Shown in pieces: positions 11,632-59,669 of a stretch of DNA of 64,000 bases. The notes beneath the pieces are model-generated. The model was not told the origin of the DNA. It was given only the letters and a program-made list of their open reading frames with translations, and searched no databases. Every line of letters begins with the position of its first letter. Within the stretch, counting starts at the first letter, position 1. The DNA lies in NCBI GenBank assembly GCA_002269645.1, contig NIVC01003207.1, positions 75,004 through 139,003 on the forward strand, given 5' to 3'. This DNA comes from Macrostomum lignano. Lineage: Eukaryota. A program made the position numbers and the translations under genes.

Positions 11632-11924
11632 GCAGCATAATGGATTATAATGATTTATTACTGCTTACAGATGATCAATTCATATCAACAGAAATTTATT
11701 TTGCCTATATTTAAAAGAAAAAAATGGATATTGGCGGAAAAACTTAAAAAAGACATTTGGTAGAGTAATAGAGTACTTGGATAGGTTTAAGGACCACGAT
11801 TCAGGTATTAAGGAACAAATCAGGAGACCTAGACCCTAATACCTGAATACCTAATACCTGATATTAACTCAACTTAATCGATATGAAGTTAAGTTAATAT
11901 CGATTAGGGCACCAAATTAGTAGC

Positions 11925-12385
11925 TAATAGGGGATCAAATTAGGAGATATTAGGAGACAAAATTAGAAGCTAATAGGGGACCAAATTAGGAGGTACTAGG
12001 GGACTGAATTAGGAGATATTAGGGAACCAAATTAGGAGATATTAGGAGACAAAATTAGGAGATTAGGACACCAAACTAGGGGATATTAGGGGACCAAATT
12101 AGGAGATATTAGATGACCAGATAAGGAGATATTAGGGGACCAAATTAGGAGATATTAGATGACCAGATAAGGAGATATTAGGGGACCAAATTAGGAGATA
12201 TTAGGGGACCAAATTAGGAGATATTAGGGGACCAAATTAGAAGATATTAAAGGACCAAATTAGAAGATATTAAAGGACCAAATTAGAAGATATCAAAGGA
12301 CCAAATTAGGAGGTATAAGAAGGAACAAACTGGGAGCTATTATGGAACCAGATTAGGAGATATTAGGGGATACAAATTAGAGGCC
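11925..12385. repeat. 23-bp minisatellite GGGGACCAAATTAGGAGATATTA (CNOT6-MEN1 spacer)
   Basis: Degenerate tandem unit visible. Confidence 0.85.
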
Positions 12386-13037
12386 GTACCAGATTAGGCG
12401 AAAATCCATTAAAATACAATATATAAGACCGATAAACTAATAACAATAAAAGTACAGTGTGTACTTAAATAAAAGACAAAAACAAAGTTTCAGTGTAAGT
12501 AGCTCGAAAGTAATCAATAGCCAACAAGCAAAACACACTACTTAGCTACTTAGCTAATAGTAGTATGTACTTATATTGAGCAGGAATTTTCTTCTATTCT
12601 TCTAGTAACCATAAAAATAGAATTAAAATGAAAAAAAATCAAATAAGTAAGCTGCAACAAAAAACCATCTAAACGTGGTGGACAAAAATATACCAAAAAT
12701 GATTGATTTAAAATTAAATGCCAAAAAATCTTAAGTAAAATGTTATAGTAATTTTTTAAATTTTACGACTTAGAAGTAGAAATCTGCCAAATGAAACACT
12801 TTTTTCTTATTATCAACTACTTAAAGTAGGCTGCATTGCTGATATTTTATGAGAAACATGAAAAAAAATTAATTTAAAACTATACAATGAAGAATAAAAT
12901 TTAAAAATCAATTAGACAATATTCTTATTATCAACTATTTAAGGTACACTGGATTGCTGATATTGTATGGTTATAATCAACTTATTACTAGAAGGTTGCA
13001 GACGAATTTTAATAGTCACTTTAATAGTTCTCAATGT

Positions 13038-16000
13038 TTAGCTGGTTTGCCGCTCGTCACCGTTGCCATGGTTACTACTACTACCACTAGCTGGTAGCAG
13101 TTCCAGCTCGGCTAGCAGTGAGAAATGATCAGACGATATATGCGGATGCGGACAGCCAAGAATGCCATTCTGGGCAAACCAGGACTCCGGAATCATGTCC
13201 AAATAGCCGATGTTATTGAAATGATCCGCCGTGAAGAATATGTAGTCGATGACGCCTCGGAAACCGTAGGTGAAATTTGTGCAATTATTCGAGCCAAAGT
13301 AGCAGGGCAACAAGTTGAAATCGTGCTCAAGGTGCTCCTCGGTTGGGGCTAGTTGTGATCGGCGAGGCGTGAGCTTGTCCAGAATTTTAGCGTAGCCCAG
13401 CTCTTTGAAGTCTAGATGGGACTTGTTTACCCGGCCGCGAGATAGGTACTCGAATACACCTGACAGGATGTCAGTGAGGAGATGCCGAACATTAGAGCAC
13501 AAGCTCACACAGGGTGTACGATCGGTCCCTGACTTATTCGAATCATTTGAGACTCTTATTATAAAGATTTAGGGGCGATTCCTTTGGTGATTTAGGGGCG
13601 ATTCTTTTGGTGATTTAGAGGCGATTCTTTTGGTGATTTAGGGGCGAATCTTTTGGTGATTTAGGGGCGAATCTTTTGGTGATTTAGGGGCGATTCTTTT
13701 GGTGATTTAGGGGCGATTCTTTTGATGATTTAGGAGCGATTCTTTTGGTGATTTAGGGGCGAATCTTCTGGTGATTTAGGGGCGATTCTTTTGGTGATTT
13801 AGGGGCGATTCTTTTGGTAATTTAGGCGCGAATCTTTTGGTGATTTAGGAGCGATTCTTCCCCTAAATCAAACATTCTAACAGTATAAGCAAATGCATTT
13901 GTAGGGACTTTTGGGTAGCCATGCGATTCAGACCACTAATGTAGAGCCAACCATCTAAGTCACAGAGTATTTATCATTTTGTTTAACACTGTTTCCTGCG
14001 TTTAAGAAAAGTACCTTCTTTTGAGTGCCCACAAGCTAATTTGTCTATGGCCTAAACTCCCACTTTCGGTTTCAGCCTCAAACTAACTGTACACTAACTT
14101 TAATTAAATGGACTCGATCGCCCCCCCAGCCAAGATTTAATTGTCCGCTCAACTTAATTAATCATCTTCATCTTTACAACCCTACAATCCTTACAATCCT
14201 ACAGTCTACACCAGCTCACCGGAATCAGGCAGTGAGTTGAAATCGCCGCATATAATAGTGGGCATGCTAGCCACATCGACTTTGTCAGCCTGTGGATTCT
14301 GCTCGCGTAGATGATTCTCAATCTTCTTCCATAGCGCCGAAAGCAGCATGATGGACTGGATTAGTTTGACATCAGAGTACTCCGGATCCCAGTGAATGTG
14401 AGCGGTGGACACCACTAGCTGACGGCGCTGACCTGTGGACTCTTCCAGCACCTCAAAGATGGCCATGATTGCGACATTGTCGCGTACCATCACCCTGTTG
14501 ATCATCTGGTGGTTTGCCTGCAGGTTGCAGTAAGTGCATTAAGCACTTGTTTAACACTGCATTTCAACTACAGAATATCACAATAAACTACAAGAATCTT
14601 ACATTAAACTACAATAATCTCACATTAAACTACAATAATCTCACATTAAACTACAAGAATCTCACATCAAACTAAAAAATTGCACACTAAACTAACAGAA
14701 TCTGAAATAAAACTACAAGAATCTCACATTAAACTACAAGAATCTCATATTAAACTACAAGAATCCCATATGAAACTACAAGAATCTCACATTAAACTAC
14801 AATAATCTAATATTAAACTACAATAATCTCACATGAAACTAAAATAATCTCAAATTAAACTACAAGAATCTCACATTAAACTACAATAATCTCACACAAA
14901 ACTACAATAATCTCACATTAAACTACAATAATCTCATATCAAACTACAAGAATCTCACATTAAACTACAAAAATCTCACATTAAACTACAAGAATCTCAC
15001 ATTAAACTACAAAAATCTCACATTAAACTACAAGAATCTCACATTAAACTACAAGAATCTCACATTAAACTACAGGAATCTCACATTAAACTACAAGAAT
15101 CTCACATCAAACTAAAAAATTGCACATTAAACTAACAGAATCTGAAATAAAACTACAAGAAACTCACATCAAACTACAAGAAACTCACATCAAACTACAA
15201 GAATCTCACATTAAACTACAAGAATCCCATATGTAACTACGGCAATCTACCTTGCAATCCTTCTCGTATTTCTCAACAGCCATCTGTGAGAACTCAATGA
15301 GGTCCTCTTTAACCAGCGTAAAGCGGTCTCGCTTCCAAAAGATGGCCACCCCGTCGACATACTTGCTCTCATTGGCTGTCATCGTTCTTGCTCGACTCTT
15401 CGGACTAAAAATGCCTTCATAACCGGCTTTAGCCAGTTCCGGGCGGAAGAACACGCCAAACTGCTCAGTTTCAACTTCTTGCAAGCAGAGAATGTCAGCC
15501 TGGTAGGCTCGCAGTTCGTCCATTATGCCTCGACGTCTGTATTCCCATTGCAGGGCCCAGGATGGACAATAAGGATACTGCTTCTTAGTGGCGTACGCTT
15601 CGCATAGCACGTTGTAGCACATCACAGTGAATGCTGTACCATGGATACTACTGCCGTTGGCGCCGCTAGTAGTACCGTTTGAGCCGCTAGTTGTCGACTG
15701 GGAATTGTTTGGTGCAGAGGCGTGACCATTGCGCGAGATCGAGTCAGTATTGCTGCGACCGCCCAGATAGCACCACTTGCGACTTGGAGGCGGCGTCATG
15801 GCGAAGCCTGGGGACGTGATTTAGGGGCGATTCTTCCAGTGACTTAGGGGCGATTCTTCCAGTGACTTAGGGGCGATTCTTCCAGTGACTTAGGGGCGAT
15901 TCTTCCAGTGATTTAGGGGTGATTCTTCCGGTGATTTAGGGGTGATTCTTCCAGTGACTTAGGGGCGATTCTTCCAGTGATTTAGGGGTGATTCTTTCAG

Positions 16001-18040
16001 TGATTTAGGGGTGATTCTTCCAGTGATTTAGGGGCGATTCTTCCAGTGATTTAGGGGCGATTCTTCCAGTGATTTAGGGGTGATTCTTCCAGTGATTTAG
16101 GGGTGATTCTTCCAGTGATTTAGGGGTGATTCTTCCAGTGATTTAGGGGTGATTCTTCCAGTGATTTAGGGGTGATTCTTCCAGTGATTTAGGGGCGATT
16201 CTTCCAGTGATTTAGGGGTGATTCTTCCAGTGATTTAGGGGCGATTCTTCCAGTGATTTAGGGGTGATTCTTCCAGTGATTTAGGGGTGATTCTTCCAGT
16301 GATTTAGGGGTGATTCTTCCAGTGATTTAGGGGCGATTCTTCCAGTGATTTAGGGGTGATTCTTCCAGTGATTTAGGGGCGATTCTTCCAGTGATTTAGG
16401 GGTGATTCTTCCAGTGATTTAGGGGTGATTCTTCCAGTGATTTAGGGGCGATTCTTCCAGTGATTTAGGGGCGATTCTTCCAGTGATTTAGGGGTGATTC
16501 TTCCAGTGATTTAGGGGTGATTCTTCCAGTGATTTAGGGGTGATTCTTCCAGTGATTTAGGGGTGATTCTTCCAGTGATTTAGGGGCGATTCTTCCAGTG
16601 ATTTAGGGGTGATTCTTCCAGTGATTTAGGGGTGATTCTTTCAGTGATTTAGGGGTGATTCTTCCAGTGATTTAGGGGCAATTCTTCCAGTGATTTAGGG
16701 GTGATTCTTCCAGTGATTTAGGGGTGATTCTTCCAGTGATTTAGGGGTGATTCTTCCAGTGATTTAGGGGTGATTCTTCCAGTGATTTAGGGGTGATTCT
16801 TCCAGTGATTTAGGGGCGATTCTTCCAGTGATTTAGGGGTGATTCTTCCAGTGATTTAGGGGTGATTCTTCCAGTGATTTAGGGGTGATTCTTCCAGTGA
16901 TTTAGGGGCAATTCTTCCAGTGATTTAGGGGTGATTCTTCCAGTGATTTAGGGGTGATTCTTCCAGTGATTTAGGGGCGATTCTTCCAGTGATTTAGGGG
17001 TGATTCTTCCAATGATTTAGGGGTGATTCTTCCAGTGATTTAGGGGTGATTCTTCCGGTGATTTAGGGGCGGATCTTCCAGTGATTTAGGGGTGAATTCT
17101 TTCAATGATTTAGATAGGATTTCTACATTGATTTCAAGGCATTAAAATGGTCATATCAAAAATATTTGCAGGATGGTTGTGGGCAACCCGACGTAACGCA
17201 TTCAGCGACATCGTCCTACAACCGGCGCTGACGGCAATTCTGCCCGTTCCGCTGACTTCTGAGCGCATGCAAGCGCGCTGAGAATGTACTTTACAGACAC
17301 ACACTCATCACAGGCTCACAGACTTCTAATCATGCCTTGGGGATTGGCCCCTATAGCTGTGATTCGGAAGACAACCCACCCGCCAATATTGTGTAGCCGC
17401 TCACGGAAACGAACCAGGAATTGTATTGCGACAGGGCCAGATGCATTTTACAGCTGAGCTGCTCGGGCAAATGCCAATTACACTATTCAGACATATAGTG
17501 TTTACCTTCGCTATCCAGCAGCCAGGACAGCATACTCTGAGTAGTCTCAGAATTGTACAATTGCAGCATATCCGGATTAAGAGGATTATGATTGAGATTA
17601 AGCACCGTCAGTTGAAACAAGCGGCCCAATTGCATAGGCAAACATCTGATTTGATTGCACTGCAGGTGCAACTCTTTTAATTCTGTTATTTCGCCAATTT
17701 CTGGCGGCAAGATTTTCACCATATTGTAGGACAGGTCGAGGTGAACAAGATTTTTCAGCTGAGCAATCTCAGGCGGGATTACGCTAATCCTGTTGTGCGA
17801 CATGTACAGGTAGCGCAGAAACGACATCGAGCACAAGCCTTGTGGAAAGATCTTTACTCCGCCAAGAATTTCTAACTGATCCCAGCTGGCTTTCGAAGGT
17901 GATTGTTTCTCTTTCCGTTGTTGCAGACTTTGCTGCTTTTGCTGAGCGTTGTTGGTGCAACCATTTTCTTTGGCATCAAGGAAGTGCACCTGCCGACGAC
18001 TGCTCATGTTTATCTCCCATAATTTGCGTTTTCTCTGCAT
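13038..18040 (-). CDS. CNOT6: CCR4/CNOT6-type deadenylase (LRR + EEP nuclease), 4 exons: 18040-17506, 15807-15251, 14517-14220, 13459-13038; ~603 aa
   Basis: LRR repeats (LYMSHNRISVIPPEI, LDLSYN). EEP motifs VMCYNVL, LCLQEVE, TAHIHWDP, ICGDFNS, GVIDYIF and SSDHFSL. Phases 1,0,1; total 1812 nt. Confidence 0.93.
13568..13870. repeat. 23-bp minisatellite GGTGATTTAGGGGCGATTCTTTT in CNOT6 intron 3
   Basis: Tandem unit visible. Same family as 15816-17105. Confidence 0.9.
14575..15240. repeat. 21-bp minisatellite CTCACATTAAACTACAAGAAT in CNOT6 intron 2
   Basis: Tandem unit directly visible. Confidence 0.9.
15816..17105. repeat. 23-bp minisatellite GTGATTTAGGGG(C/T)GATTCTTCCA in CNOT6 intron 1 (~55 units)
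   Basis: Highly homogeneous array starting ~7 nt from the 3' splice site. Confidence 0.95.
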
Positions 18041-18139
18041 CGCTTTTGGTTATTGTTCTATATTTCTACCTGAAGAGATTAGGACATAAATGAATTATTT
18101 TTACAACTGAAACTTACTCAGCCTATCTGAATCTTGATT

Positions 18140-18635
18140 TATGGGCGATTCCTAAAGTGATTAATGGGCGATTTCTAAAGTGATTAATGGGCGATTTCTA
18201 AAGTGATCAATGGGCGATTTCTGAAGTGATCAATGGGCGATTCCTAAAGTGATTAATGGGCGATTTCTAAAGTGATTAATGGGCGATTTCTAAAGTGATT
18301 AATGGGCGATTCCTAAAGTGATCAATGGGCGATTCCTAAAGTGATTAATGGGCGATTTCTAAAGTGATTAATGGGCGATTTCTAAAGTGATTAGTGGGCG
18401 TTCCTAAAGTGATCAATGGGCGATTCCTGAAGTGATTAATGGGCGATTCCTAAAGTGATTAATGGGCGATTCCAAAGTGATCAATGGGCGATTCCTGAAG
18501 TGATCAATGGGCGATTCCTAAAGTGATCAATGGGCGATTTCTTAAGTGATCAATGGGCGATTCCTAAAGTGATTAATGGGCGATTCCTTAAGTTATCAAT
18601 GGGCGATTCCTTAAGTGATTAGTGGGCGATTCTTA
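18140..18635. repeat. 23-bp minisatellite GTGATTAATGGGCGATTCCTAAA upstream of CNOT6
   Basis: Tandem unit visible. Related to the CNOT6 intron 1 and intron 3 units. Confidence 0.9.
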
Positions 18636-19830
18636 ACGTATTTTATTGCAAAAGAGCTAACGCTAAATTACAGAGGTCTACATCTATCCTGAAAAAAACA
18701 AAAATAAATATAATACTTTAACAGCCACTAATTTTTAGAAAGTTGCAATTATTTTTTATTTAATAATTTACTCACAATTATTTTCAGAGAACACAGTAAA
18801 ACAAAATTATCTTCAAGTTTAATAATTAAGAAAAGGCATATCACCCAACCCGATGAAAACGGTACTTAGGTACTTAGTAGAAAGTTAATCGTCAACACAA
18901 TGACTCTTAGACAAATTTTTCGTGACTATATTACGATTCTGCCACTCGCATGATATGCTTGTGATAGTGAGTTGTTTACACTGACTATTTAACTTGTACT
19001 TATTAACAGTCGTGTCTATAGTGAAATTAATAACTTGAAAAGCAACTCAATATTATTGACAGCGAATGAAATGCAGCCATGAAATCAGATACTTATGACA
19101 ACAAGAACAGAACATGAAATTGAATAAATTCATAGCCGTTATTAACAAACATTTCAGCCCAAATAAGATTTTACACAACAAAACTTCTACCAGAGGCTAG
19201 TTTATAAGTATTTCTGGCAAAATTTACAACTAAACTGATTTCATAAAAAATGCATTTAATGTTATTGTTCAGCACTAAATATAGATCGTTTTATTCTTAC
19301 CATTTGATGAACTCCGAATCGCATATGTTAGCAAGTAATTGCTGTGGACTGCGGTCTCACTCTGAAGCTACTACCAGGTAATTATTTTTTTATCGATTAA
19401 ATATTGATAATAAAAAACTGCTAAGACGAGAAATCGAAAAAATTAATAAGTACAAACAGATTTCACTGATTTGGTAGTTAAAACTAGAAGTCCACGCCTA
19501 AAGGCGGTTGCACCACAGACAGTCTTGAAACCAAGGACTACCGAAAATCTCAGGACGCAGAACTTAAACTTGGTAGAAATTTGTAACATTCTAAAATCAG
19601 CCATACTGCTTGCTGGCTTTGAAAAGTTATTTTATATTTTGCTTTTTTTCTGGTTTTACTTGCCTAAACTGAGATTCGGAAGTTCAAATGTACAGATTTT
19701 TCGTCAATGTCAATGCTTTAATTAAACTTTCCGAATGGATTCGTTCCATTCAGAATCTAGTTAACTATTTAATGTATAATAGTAAACCACAGTTTAATTT
19801 AAATAACATTCCAATCGGGAAGTAACGGCA

Positions 19831-32003: not shown

Positions 32004-35000
32004 TGTGACGTTGTCAGTTTAAGGTGGTCCCGAAAAGGGCCGTTGGACTGCTGTTTCTCCATAGTTTCAACCCTTCAGTTTCACCGTTCCAACTAAACTT
32101 TTCCATTTGTTTATTGCGACGTTTACTTGTAGTAGTGCCCAACGATTTTGTGGCAATTTCTAATTCACTGTATATTTTACTATCCTCTCTCGCGACCGTT
32201 TAAAATTGGCACGATCGATAATTTCAAGTTCTCTCGCCAGCCAATGAAAACTCTCCGTGTTTTACGCTCCCCCCTCTGCGCTCCTTTATTAAACCCCCCG
32301 CCTGGCGGCAGGCACTCCTCACTCCCTGCTCGTCCCTGTTCTTGTGTTCTGTGTTCTCTCTCCTTAGGCTTGCCTCCGTCCCGTCTGGCTTGCCTAGCCT
32401 TGTCTAGCCTTGTTTTCCTTCTCTCTGTCTGGCTGCCTCGAGCCTCCTTACCTCACGCCACGGCTGACGCCAACCTCGCCACTGCTCATCTGCCTACCTA
32501 CTACGTCTCACTGCCTTCACTGTACTCATTGCCATTGATCATCACGTTACGTCGCCATTATATCACTCGTCTGTCGCTTGAACTCACATCCAATTTATTG
32601 TCTTGTAACCGTGACAAACGGAGTGGTCTAAGATCTGACCTCATCAATATCAACGTCTGTGTATTGTACATTCACGCCAAAAAGGCAATAAGCGCACAGG
32701 ATACAGGGAACATGAAGAAAACGGCAGGTAGACGGCGCACAATACCGTAGGGGAGGATGGAAAAAGGGAAGGACAGCCGGCAAAAAGGACGACAAAAGCA
32801 GACGGAGGAAAAGCAGCAATCAAACAAAGAGAGAAACAGAGAATCCAGAAAAAGCAAAAAGTAGTACATTAGAACGGCCCAGAGCCCGTCGCAGACAGGA
32901 TAGGCAAAAGCAATACCAAAAGTTGAGAAGGCAAAGAAGAAGACAGCAGGAAGAAGGAAAGGAAAAGCAGACGACAGACACGCGCCACCCCCCCCCCCGG
33001 CTGCCACCCGGGGGACCAACGCACACCACACGAAGTCACAGCTACAGTCCGTCCGGTTTTCTGGCCAAAACCGGCAAACCCGTACAAGCACCAAAGGAGA
33101 CGGGCCAAGTCGGCGAGGCGCGAGGCCACCCGTCATAAGGGCGTAGTGCCAGACCACGACAAGCAGTGGAGATTGTGATTAAAGTTAACCATAATAACAT
33201 ATAAGTAGCATAGTTAGTAAATTAATAAGTTAGTTAAACTTCCTACATCCAAGTTAAGACATAAGTAGCATATAAAGTAAGTAGTCATCAAAGATAAATA
33301 TGGCCTAATTGGAAAGAATTAACCAAAGAAATCTATTTGGACCCACACCCCCCACACACCTTTGGAAAGATTTCAAGAGCTGCCATACCTCCCCGTCCTT
33401 CTATGGAAAGCCTCCGCCTCATAAACCCCTCCCTCAAGTACCATGATCGACAACAGTTTCTGTTCGGCTTTAGTGAAACCTAAATTAGTTAAAATTTGCG
33501 ATGTTCTCTTCTCCATGCATCCTCTCCAATTCCAGATAAGCCCAGAGCATTTAAATCCTGGTTTTTCTAACGACTTAAGGTTATAGTAATTAAGGACCCA
33601 ATCTTTGATGCATGGTTTGTTATAATAGCTACATTTATTATCGGCAGCTCTTTCCATACTTCCTGGTCCCACTCCCGCATCTGCAACAATTGAGACGTCC
33701 CCAATCCAGGCGGTGTTGCCCATCTTCCAAATCAGGTCTGGCCTACGACCTCCTTCTTTCGTAGAAATAAGCTGTTCTTTGATAGGTTGATGAGCTCTAG
33801 TTTCTAATTTGGCAAAAATATAGTTAACAATCTTATGGTGCCTGAAGTTACGTTTGTCGAATGTACGATTACAGCTTTGTAAGATGTGCCCCAAACCTTC
33901 AGCTCTACGACAGCCCGCATCGCAATTCGGAGCTTTGCCCCGACCTCTGGATGCACGGGCCCTGGTAGGCCAAAGATTGGATCTTATTTTGAGGCACTTA
34001 ATACACATTTCTGATGAGACTATGCTTGTGCCGTCGGAGACCCAGTCATGAACGAAAGGGACCTCGGCGGCTTCAGCAAGGCCTCTGCCATCCATCGTGT
34101 TGTTGAGCCTCTCTTTCCAATGGAGGTTAATTTCATTCATACTGTTATAAACTATTAAAGATTTGTCAAGTTTAAATTTATTGGCGAATTTAGGTTGATT
34201 AGCGATCTTCTTAATTAGAGAGTCACTACAGTTAATAAGGCTTTGAAGTTTCCTGTTCTTAAAGTAAGGAATACATGTAGTAAATGAACTAATACCCAGG
34301 CCTCCATCGCGTACCCTCGCATGAATTATAGGCGACGGAGTATCCTTGGGTAACCTGAGTATATTGATAACCCATTTTCTGACCGTAATGTCTGCTTCTA
34401 ATAATGTCTTTTTGTGGATTCTACCGTTAGTAAGAAGATAATTAACTTTAGGTATGACATTAGTGGAAAGTAGGTACATGCGTTGCTGAGGCCTAAGAGG
34501 GGCCTCCTTAAGTTTGGCAAGCATGTCCTTTAAGACCTTCAATCCCGGCTGCACTTGCCCTTTGGCATTGATCTCAATTCCCAAATATTTATAGCTATTT
34601 TGAAGGCCTATATTAGGTAGTTCTTGGTTGTAAATTTTAAATCTAATGCTTTGGTTATTAAGCCACCTCTTGTTCTTCCCATCCCAAACGATCGCGATGG
34701 TAGCACTCTTCTTGATATTGACTTCGAGGCCAGTTGGAGCAAGGGCCTCTTCAAAGGTACTGAGATGTTTAGTAAGTCCGGCTTCACTCGATGCGCAGAT
34801 AGCCATATCGTCCGCAAATGCTGCAGAGTTGACTCTCTCCTGAGCAATTGGGAAGGCTAGGTGCGGGTCGAGTGAGCCCAGGACCTCATCTATTACAAAA
34901 TTAAAAAGGATAGGTGACAAAGGGTCACCTTGCTTGACCCCCCTCCCAAGATTAGTAGTATTCCCAAAGATTTCAGTAGTATTGTTGGTGTATAAGTTGT

Positions 35001-36722: not shown

Positions 36723-37993
36723 CTAAGGCAGCGCAGAGGCGGTAAAGCCGAGAACCTCAACTTCGCACAGGCTGACGTAAGTGTTCAGCCGATTGATGAG
36801 GCGAACCCGACTGCCGTAGCCGAGGCAGCTGACCGTCTTGATGGAGAAGCTCTGAGCTACGTCCACCCTGGCGCACTCGATATCGTCAACCAGCAGGGTG
36901 AAGCTGTTGAGCCTCTCAGCGCAGCAGTCCTGCCTGTTGAAGATGCGGACTGCCGTGATGCGGGACTGCTGAGCGAGGTCGGCCTGCCACCACTGGAAGT
37001 CGCCTCCGTCGGTGTGGGTGCAGGAGCCTCCGTAAAAGTTTTGATTCTTGTTACCGTCGATCGCTAGACCGCAGAAATATTGTCCAAGAGTGGAGATCTG
37101 GCTGCAGTTTCGAATGGTCAGAACGGATTCCGTTGGCGCTGCAAGAGTCAATAAACTCTCAAATTTAGAAATAATTTGTAGAACTGCATTAATGAGTGCC
37201 CTGATTGGCAGTAAAATATGGAATATTTTTCAGTCAATAATCCTGTCACACAGCCTTTCAGCCTGTTTAGAGGCAATGATGTGCAACTTGCAAGCGATGG
37301 AAATAAAGAAGCCTGGTTATTCTTCCCGCAGCAGTTAATCTGCAAATCCAGTAGTCCCCACGCCTAGTGATGTGTTACACTTTTATAAGTATGGTATGAT
37401 AAGTATTCGTAAGTGTGGGTGCAGGAGCCTTCGTGAAAGTTCTGATCCGTGTTACCATCGATTGCTTGACCGCAGACTGCGCTCTGGTAAGTAGAGATCT
37501 GACTGCAGTTTCGGACAGTCAAAAAGGCTTCTGTTGGCTCTAAAGCTACCAAAGCGAAGGGCAGACATTGAAATAACAGTTTTGAATCTCAGCACTTATA
37601 ACCAAAAATTCCTCCTTAACATTATTTATGTCATTGAATTCATTCAGTGTGGAACTCACAGTCGAAAGACTTCGTGAAGACGTCGACCGGCTTGTCGCTC
37701 GGCTGCCACAGCGACTTGCTGAAGAACGCAGCGATGCTGAACAGCTGGCACGACAGACTCGCCTCTTGCCAGTAGAAGCCGAAGCAGACACCGGACTGGG
37801 CTCTGCACTGCAGAGAGCACTGCAGCTCGCTGCCAACTTCCTGCACGGACTTGAAGGACTGCGGCACCGTCAGGCTGTGGGGCTGGGCTAAAGAGAACAG
37901 CGTCTGGTTGGCGCAGCTGCCGGGGTCATTGCCTGCGACTTTCGAGGAGGTTGTCGCCAGCAGAGCGAATGCCAGTTGAAGGAGACGTTGCAT
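36723..37993 (-). CDS. Secreted PAN/Apple + F-type lectin (FTP) protein, copy A; exons 37993-37660 and 37138-36723; 249 aa
   Basis: Hydrophobic N-terminus; PAN-like C-x3-C-x5-C-FGFYW-x6-C; AIDGN; intact fucose motif H-x26-R-x-D-x4-R; phase-1 GT/AG junction. Confidence 0.85.
37364..37545 (-). other. Truncated FTP exon (possible alternative terminal exon) inside lectin A
   Basis: Phase-1 TAG acceptor. Encodes the FTP N-half up to GSCTHT, then an unrelated tail and a stop. Confidence 0.7.
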
Positions 37994-42529: not shown

Positions 42530-43600
42530 AGCTACACACATTCACCTCAACTTAGACGATGGACTGCAAACCCCCCTCTCTCATCCTCAGGAAGGGCTTC
42601 AAATGTACCCTTCCGCCGCGAGGGTGCCACCCATTGGACGTGGGCATCAACCGGAGAAGCCAGGGCATTCACTGCTTCACTGACGGATCCCTGTGTGACG
42701 GCCTAGCGGGCGCGGGCATTGCCATTTTCCACAAGGGTGAGACGATCTTTCAAGAGAGTCTTCATCTTGGTGAAAATGTCTCGGTTTTACAATCCGAAGT
42801 TATGGCTATCAACCAGTGCGCTGAGCATTTGCACAAAGCTGGCATCAGCAGCTTTGACATAAATTTTTACTCTGACAGCCAGGCTGCTATTAAAGCCTTG
42901 TCTTCCATCAAGCTCTCAACCAAGTCAGTTTCAGACAGCTTCAAAAGCTTGCAGACCCTGGCGATTCTCAACAGGATCAATGTTATCTGGATACCAGGCC
43001 ACAGCAATATCCTCGGAATTGAGCCTGTGGATCAACTCACCTAACGGGGTAGCACCCCGGGTGGAGCGCAACGCTCGGTCAAGTTACCTTCTCCGAAGTC
43101 ATCAGTCAACCGCGCCATTCAAGAGTGGCTGAACCACTAGCACCAGATCCACTGGAAGTATCCGAATATCTAATCTCCTTAAGCAAAACTGACCTCAGGG
43201 AGATGTGCATGGTCATTACTGGCCATGGCTTCTCCCAGAGACATATTTTACTGCAAAGTGGTTGCTCCCCTATCTGCCCATTCCGTGATTTAGAGGAGGA
43301 AACCTCGACGCACCACGTCACTTTCTGCCTGCACTTCAACGAGGCGCGGAGACGTCACCTCGGTCACCCGCTAAGGCTGGACGAGCTCACCACTCCGGAC
43401 CGGATCCGTGACCTGCGCGCATTCGTTCGGGATTCTGGACGGATGAAGATCGCAGACGCCACTCTCGCGAGCTCTTCTGCTGCCGACGAGGGGTGGGCGC
43501 AGCCCCAAGGCTAACGCCTTCCTGTTTTTAGCTTGGCCGGGTTGTGATAGGGGCCTCGCGGCCTAATCGCGGCGTTCGGCCCCCTTCGTCGGTAGTAATT
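42530..43600 (+). mobile_element. 5'-truncated LINE 3' end with RNase H and CCHC remnant (I/Loa-like)
   Basis: [31 protein letters not shown], then ITGH..CPF..EET..H..C, with stops and a frameshift. Confidence 0.8.
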
Positions 43601-44059: not shown

Positions 44060-45331
44060 TTAAGGCAGCGCAGAGACGGTGAAGCCGAGAACCTCAACTT
44101 CGCACAGGCTGAACACAAGACCATGCAAGCGACTGACGAGGCGAACCCGACTGCCGTAGCCGACGCAGCTGACCGTCTTGATGGAGAAGCTCGGATCTGC
44201 GTCCACGCTGGCGCACTCGACATCGTCAACCAGCAGGGTGAAGTTGTTGAGCCTCTCAGCGCAGCAGTCCAGCCTATTAAAGATGCGGACTGCCGTGATG
44301 CGGGACTGCTGAGCGAGGTCGGCCTGCCACCAATGGAAGTCGCCTTCGTTGGTGTGGGTGCAGGAGTCATGAGAAAAATGCTGATTTTTGTTACCGTCGA
44401 TCGCTAGACCGCAGAAATATTGTCCAAGAGTGGAGATCTGGCTGCAGTTTCGAATGGTCAGAACGGATTCCGTTGGCGCTGCAAGAGTCAATAAACTCTC
44501 AAATTTAGGCATAATTTGTAGAACTGCATTAATGAGTGCCCTGATTGGCAGTAAAATATGGAATATTTTTCAGTCAATAATCCTGTCACACAGCCTTTCA
44601 GCCTGTTTAGAGGCAATGATGTGCAACTTGCAAGCGGATGGAAATAAAGAAGTCTGGTTATTCTTCCCACAGTTAATCTGCAAATCCAGTGGTCCTCACG
44701 CCTAGTGATGTGTTACACTTTTATAAGTATGGTATGATAAGTATTCGTAAGTGTGGGTGCAGGAGCCTTCGTGAAAGTTCTGATCCGTGTTACCATCGAT
44801 TGCTTGACCGCAGACTGCGCTCTGGTAAGTAGAGATCTGACTGCAGTTTCGGACAGTCAAAAAGGCTTCTGTTAGCTTTAAAGCTACCAAAGCGAAGGGC
44901 AGACATTGAAATAACAGTTTTGAATCTCAGCATTTATAACCTAAAATTCCTCCTTAACATTATTTATGTCATTGAATTCATTCAGTGTGAAACTCACAGT
45001 CGAAAGACTTCGTGAAGACGTCGACCGGCTTGTCGCTCGGCTGCCACAGCGAATTGCTGAAGAACGCAGCGATGCTGAACAGCTGGCACGACAGACTCGC
45101 CTCTTGCCAGTAGAAGCCGAAGCAGACACCGGACTGGGCCCTGCACTGCAGAGAGCACTGCAGCTCGCTGCCAACTGCCTGCACGGACTTGAAGGACTGC
45201 GGCACCGTCAGGCTGTGGGGCTGGGCTAAAGAGAACAGCTTCTGGTTGGCGCAGCTGCCAGGGTCATTGCCTGAGACTGTCGAGCAGGTTGTCGCCAACA
45301 GAGCGAGTGCCAGTTGAAGCAGATGTTGCAT
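44060..45331 (-). CDS. Secreted PAN/Apple + F-type lectin protein, copy B; exons 45331-44998 and 44478-44060; 250 aa
   Basis: Same architecture as copy A, with the H-x26-R-x-D-x4-R motif intact. Confidence 0.85.
44702..44883 (-). other. Truncated FTP exon inside lectin B
   Basis: Near-identical to 37364-37545, with the same acceptor and stop. Confidence 0.7.
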
Positions 45332-47341: not shown

Positions 47342-47826
47342 CTTCGCCTCGGTCTGAGAAATGCATCCTCGGACTTACTTTTCCATAGCCACACTGGGAA
47401 AAGGAGGAGAATGTATACTTAAATCACAGAATATGCACCGAATGCCGATTCGAGTATTTTTGTTTAAAAAATCGGTACAAGAATTAAAATCCCACCAGCC
47501 TACTCTTGTTGTGAAGCTTTGATAAGTAGGGCTTGATTTTTGCCATAGACTATTTTATGAATGAAACTGAAAAAGGAAAAGGAAAGGAAAGGTTTTCACT
47601 TAACTGAAAATTAAGTTCAGTCTGAGCTTTTCTGCGTAGCATGGCTGGAAAATCCAGACTCCAGTGCGCAGCCTATGCATGCCCAAACTATGCCTACAAG
47701 TGCCCTCCGGAGTCCCGGACACCCGATTCCTCACGGCGAACGCTGTGCTAAGGCAATGACCAAGTTGTTTGCCAGACTTCGCCTGCATCACTGGTGCAAC
47801 AGTCAGAGGACGCTCGCTCGGCAGAG

Positions 47827-49385: not shown

Positions 49386-49729
49386 CTGTGCTAAGGCAAT
49401 GGCCAAGTTGTTTGCCAGACTTCGCCTGCATCACTGGTGCAACAGTCAGAGGACGCTCGCTCAGCAGAGAAAGCGGGGGCGTACGACAGGAATAAAGAGA
49501 GCTGAAGAGAGGAAAAAGCTGGTGCGATTAAATGCTGTTTAACTGTAGTTTAACTGTGATGCGAATGAATTCTGCTTAGCTGTTGTTTGTTGATGATGCG
49601 AATGAATTCTGTTTAACTTGAGTTCTTCATTGTTTGGTTTGTTTAAATGATAAACTAAGAAAAAATGATAAAAATTTTACATTTGGTCCTCCAGGTTATT
49701 TATTATTCTTCGCTAATTTATACTACTGG

Positions 49730-50250: not shown

Positions 50251-50354
50251 TGTATTGTTGATTCTAGTTCGAAGAAAAAGCGAATTTAAATTCGGCTGTT
50301 ATGTTTTGCCACCGCTGACTGACTGCTGCTTCGTGACTGTATCTTTGTGAGAAA

Positions 50355-51607
50355 GGGGATGTCAACTTAAGCATCAGAATGGAGCCCGAAGTTCAGTTCC
50401 GGACCAAACCGACTGCAATCGATAACTTGTCGGCCCAGACGACTAGAATCGCCGAGACATCCCATCCGGCTCCCTTCCTTGGGGTCCCAGGGGATAAAGG
50501 GGATAAAATGGGGATCTCATGTCAACTTAAGGCTCTGGAATGGAGCCCGAATTTCAGCTCCGGACCAAACCGACTGAATCGATAACTTGTCGGCCCAGAC
50601 GACTAGAATCGCCGAGACATCCCATCCGGCTCCCTTCCTTGGGGTCCCAGGGGATAAAGGGGATAAAATGGGGATCTCATGTCAACTTAAGGCTCTGGAA
50701 TGGAGCCCGAAGTTCAGCTCCGGACTAAACCGACTGCAATCGATAACTTGTCGGCCCAGACGACTAGAATCGCCGAGACATCCCATCCGGCTCCCTTCCT
50801 TGGGGTCCCAGGGGATAAAGGGGATAAAATGGGATCTCATGTCAACTTAAGGCTCTGGAATGGAGCCCGAAGTTCAGCTCCGGACCAAACCGACTGCAAT
50901 CGATAACTTGTCGGCCCAGACGACTAGAATCGCCGAGACATCCCATCCGGCTCCCTTCCTTGGGGTCCCAGAGGATAAAGGGGATAAAATGGGGATCTCA
51001 TGTCAACTTAAGGCTCTGGAATGGAGCCCGAATTTCAGCTCCGGACCAAACCGACTGCAATCGATAACTTGTCGGCCCAGACGACTAGAATCGCCGAGAC
51101 ATCCCATCCGGCTCCCTTCTTGGGGTCCCAAGGGATGAAGGGGATAAAATGGGGATCTCATGTCAACTTAAGGCTCTGGAATGGAGCCCGAAGTTCAGCT
51201 CCGGACCAAACCGACTGCAATCGATAACTTGTCGGCCCAGACGACTAGAATCGCCGAGACATCCCATCCGGCTCCCTTCCTTGGGGTCCCAGGGGATAAA
51301 GGGGATAAAATGGGGATCTCATGTCAACTTAAGGCTCTGGAATGGAGCCCGAAGTTCAGCTCCGGACCAAACCGACTGCAATCGATAACTTGTCGGCCCA
51401 GACGACTAGAATCGCCGAGACATCCCATCCGGCTCCCTTCCTTGGGGTCCCAGGGGATAAAGGGGATAAAATGGGGATCTCATGTCAACTTAAGGCTCTG
51501 GAATGGAGCCCGAAGTTCAGCTCCGGACCAAACCGACTGCAATCGATAACTTGTCGGCCCAGACGACTAGAATCGCCGAGACATCCCATCCGGCTCCCTT
51601 CCTTGGG
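50355..51607 (+). repeat. Left arm: ~7.8 tandem copies of a 160-161-bp unit
   Basis: Unit starts at 50359, 50519, 50679, 50839, 51000, 51160, 51321, 51482. Confidence 0.95.
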
Positions 51608-52602
51608 CTGACTGAAACTCCTCTCGCTGGCCGCTAGACAGTTGCTCAGTAGGCTTTCGCTGCTGTGGTAAAGCATTTTCTCTGGCATAAAGTCTGGCAA
51701 CAAGACGGCGTGGAAGAGGGAATCAACAAAGCGAAGGCTAGCACCAGACCTTCGATAGCTATCTTGGTGGTAAGCGTAGCAGCCCAGGAGTCTGAGCACT
51801 GCCATTACATGACAATGGCGGCCTGCATTCCTACTTCCAGCTTTTGCTGATGAGTAGTAGCCATGAAGAAGTTGCAATCCTGGATCTCTAAAACCAAAGC
51901 GATTGTCCGCTGCTGTCACACACTCTAAGAATCACGCGGTAGGATTTCGAATTATGGCGCGAGAAAACGACAGCTAGAAAAATCAAGACGGATGCCACCG
52001 ACCGAATCGGTTGCTCCAGTTTTCTAGCGGCGTCTCTTGCCGAAACTTCCAATACTCCCGGCGGCTCGGATGTGTAACTCAAAGTCTCTCCAGGAGTCAC
52101 CTTCGTAGCTACCGAGAACCTCCTTGACACGAATGTTTTGAATGTAATAATCGGCTTGATTTAGTTGATACGGACCCACCAAAACCTCTGACAAATTCAC
52201 TGTGTGAATTCGGGGGAACCCCGAGCTTTTTGGATCCAGCGGGTTGACAGCAATCCATGCCCTTGTGTTAGCAGGGGGACACGCTTCAGATCACAGTTGA
52301 AGTGCAGCTGCTCAATTTCGTCCAGTTCGTTGGACAAGAGCACTCGGCGCATGAAATTCTGCCCGAATTCGAACAACGATAGCCCTGTCCATGACGGTGG
52401 CAGCTGTTTAAATGATTCAAAACCTGGATGCGCCCGGTTGTACTTTGCCATCGAGGTCTCGATAACAACGTCTAATCGGCTGGGCTCACTGAAGCCGGCT
52501 GACGGCAGCCACTGATACGGTTTGTGCCTCTCGTTAACACATTTGTCCTGCTTAATGGCAGCAAAGCAGCACTCAATGACATAGCGGAACATAGTGGCAC
52601 AG

Positions 52603-53676
52603 CGGATGTCTCGGCGATTCTAGTCGTCTGGGCCGACAAGTTATCGATTGCAGTCGGTTTGGTCCGGAGCTGAAATTCGGGCTCCATTCCAGAGCCTTAA
52701 GTTGACATGAGATCCCCATTTTATCCCCTTTATCCCCTGGGACCCCAAGGAAGGGAGCCGGATGGGATGTCTCGGCGATTCTAGTCGTCTGGGCCGACAA
52801 GTTATCGATTGCAGTCGGTTTGGTCCGGAGCTGAACTTCGGGCTCCATTCCAGAGCCTTAAGTTGACATGAGATCCCCATTTTATCCCCTTTATCCCTGG
52901 GACCCCAAGGAAGGGAGCCGGATGGGATGTCTCGGCGATTCTAGTCGTCTGGGCCGACAAGTTATCGATTGCAGTCGGTTTGGTCCGGAGCTGAACTTCG
53001 GGCTCCATTCCAGAGCCTTAAGTTGACATGAGATCCCCATTTTATCCCCTTTATCCCCTGGGACCCCAAGGAAGAGAGCCGGATGGGATGTCTCGGCGAT
53101 TCTAGTCGTCTGGGCCGACAAGTTATCGATTGCAGTCGGTTTGGTCCGGAGCTGAACTTCGGGCTCCATTCCAGAGCCTTAAGTTGACATGAGATCCCCA
53201 TTTTATCCCCTTTATCCCCTGGGACCCCAAGGAAGGGAGCCGGATGAGATGTCTCGGCGATTCTAGTCGTCTGGGCCGACAAGTTATCGATTGCAGTCGG
53301 TTTGGTCCGGAGCTGAACTTCGGGCTCCATTCCAGAGCCTTAAGTTGACATGAGATCCCCATTTTATCCCCTTTATCCCCTGGGACCCCAAGGAAGGGAG
53401 CCGGATGGGATGTCTCGGCGATTCTAGTCGTCTGGGCCGACAAGTTATCGATTTCAGTCGGTTTGGTCCGGAGCTGAACTTCGGGCTCCATTCCAGAGCC
53501 TTAAGTTGACATGAGATCCCCATTTTATCCCCTTTATCCCCTGGGACCCCAAGGAAGGGAGCCGGATGGGAGTTCTCGGCGATTCCAGTCGTCTGGGCCG
53601 ACAAGTTATCGATTGCAGTCGGTTTGGTCTGGAGCTGAACTTCGGGCTCCATTCTGGTGCTTAAGTTGACATCCCC
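52603..53676 (-). repeat. Right arm: ~6.7 copies of the same 161-bp unit, inverted
   Basis: Reverse complement of the left-arm unit. Confidence 0.95.
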
Positions 53677-53777
53677 TTTATTTATTTGTCTATGGTCGGA
53701 ATAAAATGGTCTAAGCCTATATGTCTATCAATCAGATGGGATGCCCCCGTAAAATAGGCAATCGAATTTCATATAAA

Positions 53778-54608: not shown

Positions 54609-55510
54609 CTAAGGCAGCACAGAGACGGGGAAGCCAAGCAGCTCAACTTCGCACAGGCTGAACACCACACCACGCAAGCGACTGACGAGGCGAACCCGAC
54701 TGCCGTAGCCGAGGCAGCTGACTGTCTTGATGGAGAAGCTCTGAGCTCCGTCTACCCTGGCACACTCGACATCATCGACCAGCAGGGTGAAGTTGTTGAG
54801 CCTCTCAGCGCAGCAGTCCTGTCTGTTGAAGATGCGGACTGCCTTGATGCGGAACTGCTGAGCGAGGTCGGCCTGCCACCATTGGGATTTGCCTCCTTCG
54901 GTGTGGGCGCAGGAGCCTCCGTGAAAGTTCTGATTCGTGTTGCCATCGATTGCTAATCCGCAGACAGCACTCGCAAAAGTAGAGATCTGACTGCAGTTTT
55001 GAACAGTCAAAACTGCTTCTGTCGGTACTGCAGCAACCAAAGCGAAGGAAAAGCATTTCACTAAGAGCCTTTAAGTCTCAGTAATTATTGAGGCTTAAAT
55101 TAGGAGGCAAAATTACCTCCTTCAAATAATTTATACCGTTGAATTCAATAAGTGCAAAACTCACAGTCGAACAGCTTTGTGAAGACATCGACCGGCTTGG
55201 CTCTCGGCTTGGCGCTCGGCTGCCACAGCGACTTGCTGAAGAACGCAGCGATGCTGAACAGCTGGCATGACAGACTCGCCTCTTGCCAGTAGAAGCCGAA
55301 GCAGACACCGGACTGGGCCCTGCACTGCAGAGAGCACTGCAGCTCGCTGCCAACTGCCTGCACGGACTTGAAGGACTGCGGCACCGTCAGGCTGTGGGGC
55401 TCGGCTAAAGAGAACAGCTTCTGGTTGGCGCAGCTGCCGGGGTCATCGCCTGTGACTGTCGAGCAGATCGTCGCCAGCAGAGCGAATGCGGCTGTGAGGA
55501 GTTGCTGCAT
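54609..55510 (-). CDS. Secreted PAN/Apple + F-type lectin protein, copy C; exons 55510-55165 and 55027-54609; 254 aa
   Basis: 137-bp phase-1 intron, fucose motif intact, no truncated extra exon. Confidence 0.87.
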
Positions 55511-56819: not shown

Positions 56820-59669
56820 TTACACCTCCACTTCGCAGAGGATCAGCGGCTCCGCTTTGTGACTATCGATACGAACAACTTCGCCGTACGCGTTGCACTC
56901 GAAAGTCCGAGCCGAGAAGTGGTCGTCGGAACGGTAAAAGGCGCATTCGAGACCACCTACGCTGATTGAGAAATCTTTGAGCCGGTCAGAGCAGCAATCT
57001 TCGAGGTACTAGATTCGAATCTTCGATACAAATGAAGCTTTGGGTAATTGCGCCTGCCACCAGTTGTTGTGTGCACTCTCAGTATGTGTGCACGACCCGG
57101 CGTGGTAGTCCTGGTTCCGGATGCCATCAAAGGCCCGTTTGCAGTCGCAACCAGAGGCAGTTGAGCTCTGACTACAACTGTTGAACTTGAGCTGTTCTGC
57201 AAGTTCCATGGAAACCCATTCTTTCATTCAGCGTTCTCGTCGATCTACAGTGTTTCTACCGGTATAAATTGTCGGTTTTAAATCTTTAACTACTGATTGT
57301 TAGTATATTTTTATTCAAGCTTATCCCGTGATACCTGCGCTTTGAGCAATGGCTATTTTGCCTCTCTGGTGTTGAGAATGCGGAGCACTCTATCTGTGAA
57401 TACTCCGCGTGTACTCAGAACAGGTTTACCTACCTCAGCCCAAACTCGGACCTTCCCGACGTTTTCAGACCCAAGAACTTCTGCGCGAGCTCTTCCGCTA
57501 CCTACGGGCTACAGACTCTCCTGGACTCTCCGGAGGGGGACTGCACTGCGTACACCGGCACCACCGGATCTGCCTACGAGACACCACAGCACCAGCTGCC
57601 TGTGATCACCAAGGGTTAGCGGGATGGTCGCCAACGCCTCCCCAACGTATCCGGATGCCCGAAACCAGCCCGCAGCTCAGCCAAGAATGTCAAGCTTATC
57701 CCATACAACAATCCGACATCATGCCGAGACATCCGCAGACGCTTTGGGCGTCCAGCAAATTGCAAAAGAGGGCAAATTATTAATTTCTGAAAAGATTTCC
57801 AATGTGATCTTAACTTTAGTTAAAGCAAATAATCTTTTGGGTACTACTATAATATTAGAGCGCATTGCTTATACTCACTTTCTGGCATAGATGTGTCTTC
57901 CGTGTCTTACAAACGCTTTATCCTCGCACATAGTCAAATTTGTTGGCCTACGATTAGCAATCTTGATTTTCTGGCCGGTGCCTGGGCACTTGAGAGTCAG
58001 CATCGAGAAAAATGAGTCGGGCTCTGACCGGTACGATGCGCATTCTTTATCGTCGATGAGTACGGCAAAGTCCGACAGCCGATCTAAGCAGCAGTCCAGT
58101 CGGTTGTAGATGCGGACATGAGTCACATCACTAACCTTGGTTAGGTGGCCCTGCCATCAGCCTCGCTCTGCTTGGGTGTGACTGCACGAACCGTGAATGT
58201 AGCCCTGGTGATGTTGCCATCGATTGCTCGGTCACAGACGCCACCATACGAAATTGAACTCTGCGAGCAAGAGTCGAAGGCCAGTTGTTCTGAAATAGGT
58301 GGGTTTTTACACGAGTAAGTTAGTACAATCTCGAGGCATCGGATGTTTTAGTGCCAATTTTTCGGCCTGTGCCTTATGTACAATAGCAATTTCAGTTTCC
58401 ACCCGTAGCATCTGATCTCACCTCCAATCGAAGGCAGGCTAATAGCATATCCGAGGACTTGCACTTCGCACAAAGAAAATGTCGATTCTCTGTGACTTTG
58501 AATTCGAACGACCTGACCAATCCTGTCTACGTTGAAATTTCATTGCAAAATGTTCGCCTCGATAAACAGCGCTAAGGTGCCCATCGATGTAGATAGAAAA
58601 GTAGTCAAGCCTCTCCGAGCAGCAGTCCATTCTGTTATAGATGCGAATCTGTTTGAAGTGGGTAAGGTGCTCAGTTCGAGCCTGCCACCAGCCCTGGTGC
58701 GCCTCCGTGTGGGTGCACGAGCCGGCGTGATAGTCCTGGTTGGTGTTGCCATCGATCGCTCGAACGCATTTGGCGCCACCAAATGTGGAGCTCTGTCTAC
58801 ACTCAATCAGCTGAATTTGCTGGTCTGAAGTGAGATTTTTTAAGTTAAAGCAATGCATTGCAGTGAAAACTTCCATATAGGGACCGGACGGCATTGGGAC
58901 TAAAGCCCTCAGTGGGTGCCCTCAGTAACTCGCAAGCAGGGGACCGCGGAACGGGGAGAAGCAGGGGCAGCTGTCCACTCCGGCATTTAGATGGAAGGCC
59001 TGTTTCTCCTCAAAAATGGCTCGTTGGAAATTGAAATGGTCAAAAAACCCTGGAGAGAAATCATGTAGAAAAAAAGCACTATGTGCGCGTAGAGAGCCTA
59101 TAAATCTTGCTTGCGACGCTAAACAGGCGCTAGAATCTCACCTAAAGTCTCTAATTGGAATTTGGGATTCTTTCTTCGCACCACGCCTGCTTGCCAGTGA
59201 CTTTTAATTTGTATTAAATGTAGTTCTCCATTGACCTCAAAGACAACTAGAACAACAACTAGGGTTTCAAGTTTTTCCTAATTAACAACGTATCAAAAAT
59301 AAAAAGCCGTATTTTTTACCTATTTTTACTAACCGCAACCGCATCCGCTTAACTTGTAGGTTAAGATTGCAGCTCTTCGACTTCTAGATGATAATTCTCT
59401 CTTCTGATTTAAATATTGGGTCTTATTTGATCCTACAAACTCTGCCAACAAATGTCACTTTTACGCGAAACTGGTCAGTTATGAGCTACTAATTCCTAGC
59501 ATCTATAACTTCATCCTCATCTGTGTATACATGTAGGCTATTTATCAGACTTTCGTATCTACAGTCAGGTTACATGTTAACACTTACAAACGGCGCCGTA
59601 CGCAGGTCGATTAACGCAGCCGGACACCAATGCCGCAAGCAGCAGGGACAGAATCGTTTTCGACGACAT
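56820..59669 (-). pseudogene. Triple-FTP F-type lectin pseudogene; exons 59669-59588 (signal peptide), 58824-58422, 58289-57879, 57196-56820
   Basis: MSSKTILSLLLAALVSG signal exon with GTAAGT donor, then three FTP exons. Lesions: frameshift ~58540, frameshift ~58208, TGA 58157-59, TAG 57009-11. Confidence 0.8.

Follow-up and report, generated by a model that had tools for sequence, protein, structure and literature searches.

Among the PHIS groups of DNA transposons, Spy is recognized by its target: insertion occurs at AAA|TTT and produces no target site duplication (TSD) (PMC4122938), a signature that has been verified by experiment for cgSpy (PMC11304231). The target sites of the other PHIS groups are AT at A|AT|T for ISL2EU, ANT for Pangu, CWG for NuwaI and TNA for NuwaII (PMC4122938, PMC4482050, PMC11304231). 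The Spy transposase is encoded by a single open reading frame (ORF) of ~700 aa with an N-terminal helix-turn-helix (HTH) (PMC4122938, PMC11304231); its catalytic triad is spaced D(79-80)D(44-62)E, and most Spy transposases are without a C2H2 finger (PMC4122938). The ISL2EU transposases tabulated in one survey are 426-525 aa long (PMC4482050); transposases of this group contain a THAP domain, and its second ORF is YqaJ. ISL2EU is the sister clade of Spy, and Spy elements of oysters were formerly filed under its name. The Spy termini follow the consensus 5'-GGANNNNG-3', which has been called 'relatively well conserved', and the cause and mechanism by which the terminal inverted repeats (TIRs) expand to kilobase length have been left open (PMC4122938). 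Here, we explore a stretch of 64,000 nucleotides (hereafter the window) of contig NIVC01003207.1 (assembly GCA_002269645.1, positions 75,004 to 139,003, forward strand), in which a 3,322-bp element with kilobase inverted arms of 161-bp units occupies positions 50355-53676. An initial annotation, made from the letters of the window alone, had described it as a Spy-like transposon turned foldback.

Based on the comparison of its ends, arms and core with relatives found in protein and metagenome collections, the element is quite probably a non-autonomous, internally deleted and mutationally dead cut-and-paste PHIS transposon of Macrostomum lignano, with a Spy-type AAA|TTT insertion and with arms formed by duplication of a terminal module.

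Ends and arms of the element

The element, whose transposase remnant lies on the minus strand, is an internally deleted DNA transposon of PHIS type with foldback architecture. It starts with the 17-nt terminal motif GGGGATGTCAACTTAAG (50355-50371, plus strand) and ends with the exact inverted copy, that is, the reverse complement of the same motif (53660-53676, minus strand). In the motif search these were the only two matches in the whole window, one for each end. AAA stands directly outside the left terminus (50352-50354) and TTT directly outside the right terminus (53677-53679), the flanks reading ...TTTGTGAG[AAA] and [TTT]ATTTATTT..., respectively. Consequently, the span 50352-53679 given by the initial annotation equals the element plus these six flanking bases. 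If the insertion is of Spy type, AAA is the host half of the AAA|TTT target and TTT is its putative second half; otherwise, they are the outermost three bases of the inverted repeat. As had been described from the letters, a TSD is missing and the flanks are AAA and TTT: no direct repeat of 2-10 bp was found in the flanks, whether AAA/TTT were counted inside or outside the element, with a single insertion considered. Once joined, the flanks form an exact AAATTT, reading GAGAAATTTATT, and the junction can be written CGTGACTGTATCTTTGTGAGAAA|TTTATTTATTTGTCTATGGTCGG.

The left arm (50355-51607, plus strand; 1,253 bp) is composed of a variant terminal unit, six full internal units of 160-161 bp and a partial unit of 124 bp. 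The right arm (52604-53676, minus strand; 1,073 bp) runs in the opposite orientation; its variant terminal unit is followed by five full internal units and a partial one of 103 bp. Both arms together make up 2,326 of the 3,322 bp (70%). Tandem Repeats Finder identified 7.8 copies of the 161-bp unit with 97% matches at 50359-51607 and, in opposite orientation, 6.7 copies with 98% matches at 52604-53672, so the opposed kilobase arms of ~8 and ~7 units of 161 bp that had first been described are borne out. Cutting the arms at GTCAACTTAAG gives eight units on the left and seven on the right. The inverted-repeat search shows the two arms to be complementary in many registers, reaching 633 nt with 96% and 494 nt with 99% complementarity, and 1,059 of 1,079 columns are identical when they are aligned from their tips. 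A 33-nt probe taken from the unit yielded 13 matches, all within the element, against a chance expectation of 0; the same probe served the check for free satellite arrays proposed earlier, and neither a free 161-bp array nor a single unit was found beyond the element in the window.

Each internal unit differs from the 161-nt consensus at 0-4 positions. The outermost units of both arms have four private differences in common, with GCAYCAGAATGG in place of the GGCTCTGGAATGG of internal units, and both arms thus mirror each other, each with a homogenised array behind a distinct terminal unit. The near identity of the units (97-98%) stands as first reported, although recent amplification, which had been concluded from it, is only one option, since homogenisation may also explain the identity. 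A unit ends in GGGGATAAAGGGGATAAAATGGGGAT-CTCAT and the next one begins with GTCAACTTAAG. Every boundary between units thus nearly reproduces the true terminus, GGGGAT-GTCAACTTAAG, except for a 5-nt insert (GGGGAT[CTCAT]GTCAACTTAAG). Three GGGGAT motifs occur in every unit, and GGGGAT/ATCCCC is found 37 times in the element vs. 17 times in the remaining 60.7 kb of the window. The whole has the structure of a foldback element, with long inverted arms built of tandem subrepeats and a core that is a fragment of a dead gene. Note that the ORFs running within the arrays (MEPEVQLRT...) were rejected as real genes: 161 is no multiple of 3, and their only homologues are gene models over other copies of the element.

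Could such a structure be something other than a transposed unit? A local inverted duplication of a 161-bp satellite around a dead fragment, or a palindromic artefact of assembly, would also place opposed arrays on both sides of a core. Only one copy could be inspected at the DNA level, and long inverted repeats are a known assembly hazard. However, the ends are sharp, and the 17-nt terminal motif also ends the own element of a relative (L001, see below). Artefactual palindromes are near-perfect, whereas the arms here differ from each other in unit number, in private substitutions and in the phase of the unit where the arm meets the core (124 on the left, 103 on the right). The outermost units deviate from the internal ones identically on both arms, the unit occurs nowhere else in the window, and the same arm/core junctions are present at two further loci at least. 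We therefore regard both the duplication and the artefact as very improbable.

The core and its transposase family

The core (51608-52603, minus strand; 996 bp) is non-palindromic and, according to HMMER and tblastn, is what remains of the 3' part of a transposase gene after decay. At least four frame changes are needed to read its ~300 codons, which are followed by ~110 bp without a match. A 295-aa conceptual translation joining the minus-strand frames was used as the query of a full HMMER search against 1.84 billion representative proteins, which returned 14 hits. Among them, P0003 is matched with E 7.8e-47 and 47% identity over 174 aa, P0004 and P0005 are closer fragments (E 2.9e-26 and 2.1e-21), and P0006-P0013 are more distant members (E 2e-11 to 2e-6). 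P0001 and P0002 (E 9.7e-44 and 4.6e-54) are gene models covering other copies of the element. P0014 (E 2.2e-6), the remaining hit, was not counted with the family because it is a low-complexity repeat protein.

With the family proteins as queries, tblastn matched a single stretch of the whole window, 52604-51701. RCATMFRYVIECCFAAIKQ, the helix of the catalytic glutamate, opens the homology precisely at the right arm/core junction (52604), and the match ends at ~51701. The glutamate codon of the DDE triad is located at 52572-52574 (minus strand) within MFRYVIECCFAAIKQ, shows the R(3)E pattern, and aligns with RFAVECTFAAIKQ of P0003 and with the VE column of the family. RYVIE is kept in the window, where only the part of the triad containing E survives; the N-terminal ~365 codons, with the zinc finger, the HTH and both catalytic aspartates, are gone. 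The two peptides that the initial annotation had likened to blocks of PHIS-type transposases indeed aligned by BLASTP with conserved blocks of the family. VFSRHNSKSY (51939-51968, minus strand) is the remnant of the conserved PSxH block, as aligned with P0004, P0006, P0008 and P0013. GYYSSAKAGSRNAGRHCHVMAVL (51794-51862, minus strand) is the remnant of the C-terminal zinc-finger-like CKxGxRxxGCCSHV block, as aligned with P0006-P0013 and in the family alignment. They sit in different frames, and the first cysteines of the latter block have been lost in the window copy and likewise in L001.

None of the individual core ORFs was matched to a family by Pfam. Among the relatives, P0011 scores above the cut-off of DDE_Tnp_4 (32.4 bits vs. 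24.8) and P0010 matches it weakly; weak HTH_Tnp_4 matches were obtained for P0003 and P0013, and N-terminal C2H2 fingers for P0003, P0007 and P0013. In addition, P0011 has a weak match, far below the cut-off (E 3e-4), to an IS5-family NCBIfam profile at the region of the glutamate. The family alignment displays conserved D, D and R(3)E columns followed by a C-terminal region of ~300 aa with the PSxH and CKxGxRxxGCCSHV blocks; the spacing of the triad, by our own assignment on this alignment, is D(93-94)D(80-102)E. The relatives are single ORFs of 758-1,075 aa, and no second ORF (YqaJ or Myb) was seen on their contigs. The catalytic region of the relatives can be aligned with DDE_Tnp_4, with R(3)E at the glutamate. 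Because these relatives carry C2H2, HTH_Tnp_4 and DDE_Tnp_4 matches together with the PSxH / CKxGxRxxGCCSHV region, the core can be placed in PHIS, as had been proposed at first sight, with family matches reaching E 8e-47. Judged by these alignments, the core is the dead C-terminal third of a PHIS-type transposase, from the helix of the catalytic glutamate to the Cys/His-rich tail, and we hold PHIS membership and the non-autonomous foldback nature of the element with high confidence.

Word-indexed protein searches added little: with the core, P0001 alone was matched, and with the family profile, three relatives from TARA alone, with no named organisms. One relative has an additional tail. In L003 (Logan SRR31252258), the frame at 1000-1344 runs past the C-terminus of the transposase into GLRNRGLQCYANVVVQ, a region absent from the window copy, which weakly matches the start of a UCH/USP protease profile (E 0.008, below the cut-off). 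Some family members may thus have a deubiquitinase-like C-terminal tail.

Insertion site and assignment among the PHIS groups

The nearest near-full-length relative is L001, a 3-kb metagenome contig of JGI encoding P0003. Its left end reads ...GCGCTTAAA|GAGGATGTCAACTTAGG, that is, the terminus follows directly after AAA, and GAGGATGTCAACTTAGG is identical to the window terminus GGGGATGTCAACTTAAG at 15 of 17 positions. For this closest lineage (the window element and L001), each of the three termini lies directly beside AAA or TTT, and the base beyond these is variable (G, A, T). Features of ISL2EU were not found: the flanks GAGAAA and TTTATT give no AT duplication, and the relatives contain C2H2 instead of THAP and have no second ORF. 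TWA, which is the 3-bp duplication of PIF/Harbinger, was absent under either choice of boundary, and so were ANT, CWG and TNA. Among the described PHIS groups, the missing TSD and the AAA/TTT flanks of this insertion fit Spy alone.

Several observations weigh against a firm Spy assignment. The window terminus GGGGATGT and the L001 terminus GAGGATGT do not fit the Spy consensus, although a shift of the terminus by two bases gives GGATGTCA, which fits three of its four fixed positions. The triad spacing of the family is wider than the published Spy values, and some members carry an N-terminal C2H2 finger, unlike most Spy transposases. In L005, the 12-nt candidate TIR (19-30 / 2389-2400) is flanked by TTT and TTT, and the homology in L011 and L013 starts after ...AAGGA and ...CCAGG instead of AAA; the boundaries of these three relatives are doubtful. 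Finally, AAA and TTT may instead belong to the inverted repeat, as its last three bases on each side, and no empty site was found: a search confined to the window detected no paralogous empty site near the insertion. M. lignano has duplicated sets of chromosomes, so that an empty site at a homeologous or polymorphic locus is likely to exist.

Taken together, these points describe an alternative in which the element is the same dead PHIS foldback but not Spy. AAA and TTT would belong to the repeat, the family would be ISL2EU or an undescribed PHIS group, and the lack of a TSD would have another cause, or a TSD would have disappeared, for instance when two copies recombined and left chimeric flanks. 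The inverted repeat in fact continues across AAA and TTT (50352-50578 / 53453-53679), the DDE spacing and the terminal motif depart from the published Spy values, the distant relatives L005, L011 and L013 are without AAA|TTT flanks, and ISL2EU is the sister clade of Spy, with the oyster Spy elements once filed under it. However, if AAA and TTT are counted as element, the flanks become GTGAG and ATTTA, which show no AT, TWA, ANT, CWG or TNA duplication, and no described PHIS group fits. The joined flanks are an exact AAATTT, and the three termini of the closest lineage keep AAA or TTT while the outward base is variable. In length, the single ORFs (758-1,075 aa) come closer to Spy (~700 aa) than to the tabulated ISL2EU transposases (426-525 aa), and a YqaJ or Myb second ORF was not seen. 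A family outside Spy therefore seems unlikely, though it deserves consideration. On the evidence of ends and target, Spy-type membership is the likelier assignment: the missing TSD, AAA/TTT here and AAA at the left end of L001 speak for the name originally given to the element, and the spacing and the terminus GGGGATGT do not.

The ends of the other relatives are less informative. The best candidate TIR of L005 (from the EMOS marine metagenome, ~33% identity), GGAGAACTTTTT / AAGAAGTTCTCC, opens with a Spy-like GGA. No TIR was found in L004 and L007. L008 and L009 represent one locus, whose AAA...TTT inverted repeat touches the end of the contig, and the ends of L010 are AT-rich and ambiguous. 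For L011-L014, the left boundary is without AAA and the right end was not found.

Host and other copies of the element

At 44060-44512, the window contains an FTP-lectin gene that is 97% identical to a Macrostomum lignano protein; its paralogues are 80-82% identical, and the best matches in other species reach 34-49%. These values identify the host as Macrostomum lignano.

Further copies underlie two chimeric gene models, P0001 (UniRef, M. lignano) and P0002 (UniParc). Both contain the translation of the unit and the same right arm/core junction (...RIAETS|AVPLCSAM; in the other frame ...RHP|LCHYVPLC); the left arm/core junction is also common to P0001, and P0002 reads through more than one full unit adjoining the core. 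The flanking parts of both models have no counterpart in the window. Hence, the same deletion derivative with arrayed arms is present at at least three loci, the window and two more. The foldback form itself has multiplied, because the loci of P0001 and P0002 bear identical arm/core junctions at other places. No contig on record was found for P0001 or the 131-aa core ORF by exact look-up. The terminus had one chance match in the metagenome scan, on a bacterial- or phage-like contig, and the unit had zero matches in viral and prokaryotic genome collections.

As gene models, P0001 and P0002 are annotation artefacts. P0001 is named 'DUF3480 domain-containing', and in P0002 (2,393 aa) array units and the transposase remnant are fused with THAP and PRP4 domains. 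An identity of the element as a THAP-containing ISL2EU, which the THAP domain of P0002 might suggest, was rejected, since this domain is ~400 aa upstream within a 2,393-aa chimeric gene model.

Origin of the arrays and possible mechanism

About 150 bp inside its end, L001 has GAAAGGAGAAAATGGGAT, the counterpart of the end of the unit. There is no 161-bp tandem array in L001, and ~800 bp of unique sequence lie between the subterminal motif and the ATG. The ancestral end may therefore have been composed of a terminal motif and a subterminal repeat of this motif ~160 bp apart. In the M. lignano lineage, the segment between both motifs would have been tandemly duplicated, and the conserved subterminal AAA(G/T)GG(G/A)GAT-like motif ~150 bp inside, which repeats the terminal motif, may have offered the sequence match needed for slippage or unequal exchange. 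The arrays would then have been kept homogeneous by unequal exchange and conversion, with the outermost unit remaining distinct on each arm; edge units that diverge more are typical of arrays that evolve by unequal exchange. Thus, as the comparison of both termini suggests, the array apparently arose after the split from an L001-like relative with the same terminus and no array. Two Logan contigs also match the core, L002 with 74% and L003 with 71% identity. L003 starts within ~3 nt of the arm/core junction 52604 of the window, which could be due to a repeat-induced assembly break there too, or to coincidence.

Under the Spy-type reading, a full-length member of the family elsewhere in the genome would supply the transposase in trans, and within the window no such autonomous partner was seen. 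The transposase may bind the repeated GGGGAT-containing modules, which would act as extra binding sites, while cleavage would be confined to the outermost GGGG termini. The internal pseudo-ends would be distinguished by the 5-nt insert and by the AAAT, rather than AAA, that precedes them. Insertion would take place between AAA and TTT, in the manner described for Spy, and leave no duplicated target. Single-stranded arms, or their RNA, would fold back on each other into a ~1-kb stem. Possible consequences are hairpin RNA, the seeding of satellites, trouble in replication or recombination, and rearrangement.

The element presents one concrete route of TIR expansion, that is, tandem duplication of a terminal module of ~160 bp. 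If the Spy assignment is true, PHIS/Spy-like elements reach Platyhelminthes. The practical value is modest: the element helps the repeat annotation of a very repeat-rich model genome, explains the chimeric models P0001 and P0002, and flags loci prone to hairpins and misassembly. A bolder scenario, which we consider improbable, is a still-active, flatworm-specific, TSD-less Spy-like lineage in which the multiplication of terminal modules is adaptive, either for the element (more sites for transposase binding and hence efficient mobilisation in trans) or for the host (silencing of the whole family by small RNA from ~1-kb hairpin transcripts). The locus would then be part of a self-limiting circuit, and the lineage would offer a native, AAATTT-specific and footprint-free vector for a flatworm that is already capable of transgenesis.

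Surroundings in the window

The element is located between the second and the third of four tandem paralogous single-exon genes of the FTP / F5/8-type-C (fucolectin-like) type on the minus strand (36723-37151, 44060-44512, 54609-55061 and 58439-58894), which are 73-84% identical in DNA; the 97%-identical M. lignano protein of the gene at 44060 is A0A1I8GNW6. Upstream of the element, an 84-bp direct repeat (49386-49469 / 47743-47826) is present with 97.6% identity and a distance of ~1.6 kb. Retroelement debris was found at two places: a 515-aa ORF at 33373-34920 (minus strand) that encodes the C-terminal portion of an RVT_1 reverse transcriptase, and a separate RNase H ORF at 42559-43044 (plus strand).

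Positions 1-19000 are unusually dense in unrelated minisatellites, with periods of 17, 13-120, 22, 21, 21, 28, 30-90, 21, 4, 23, 23, 21, 23 and 23 bp and with arrays of up to 1.3 kb (e.g., 5890-7102 and 15816-17113). The 23-bp arrays at 13566-13859, 15816-17113 and 18135-18636 consist of related GATTTAGGGG-type units. A 433-aa ORF at 9907-11208 (minus strand) has a strong match to Menin (E 6e-31, aa 266-410) and enters a (CAGA)n microsatellite (10605-11239); it is probably a Menin exon beside a simple repeat.

Comparison with known systems

Foldback transposons with arms of tandem repeats are well known from FB, Galileo and Tetris. What is new here is the tandem-repeat foldback architecture in a PHIS/Spy-like family, the array-less sister lineage that hints at its origin, and the host phylum.

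The element shares with Spy a related DDE_Tnp_4/IS5-type transposase, one long ORF in the relatives, the missing TSD, and AAA and TTT at the termini. The TIRs of Spy are themselves very variable in length, from 9 to 1,474 bp, and non-autonomous derivatives are common. However, the published long TIRs of Spy have 'no apparent subrepeat structure' (PMC4122938), whereas the arms in the window are tandem arrays; this agrees with the early impression that a foldback built of long modules is unusual in the group. The host also differs, since the 2024 survey names only Arthropoda, Cnidaria and Mollusca (PMC11304231), and the element described here is from a flatworm. Flatworm genomes were among those scanned in the 2015 survey, and a term search of its family tables gave no flatworm entries (PMC4482050). 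ISL2EU, the sister clade, is similar in that its transposases carry HTH_Tnp_4 and DDE_Tnp_4 (PMC4482050), and different in its AT duplication, THAP domain and YqaJ ORF, all of which were not found for the window element.

In architecture, the closest systems are FB, Galileo and Tetris of Drosophila (D. virilis for Tetris), which have kilobase inverted arms of internal tandem repeats and encode little or nothing. They, too, are presumed to be mobilised in trans, and the terminal-most part of the arm is likewise distinct from the repeated part. They belong to different superfamilies, FB and Galileo being related to Mutator-like and P-like transposases. The repeat of Tetris is ~220 bp long, compared with 161 bp here, and also forms free satellite arrays (PMC4079207), unlike the 161-bp unit, which has no free array in the 64-kb window. 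In addition, no partner transposase is known for Tetris, whereas the parent family of the window element can be named from the remnant that it still carries.

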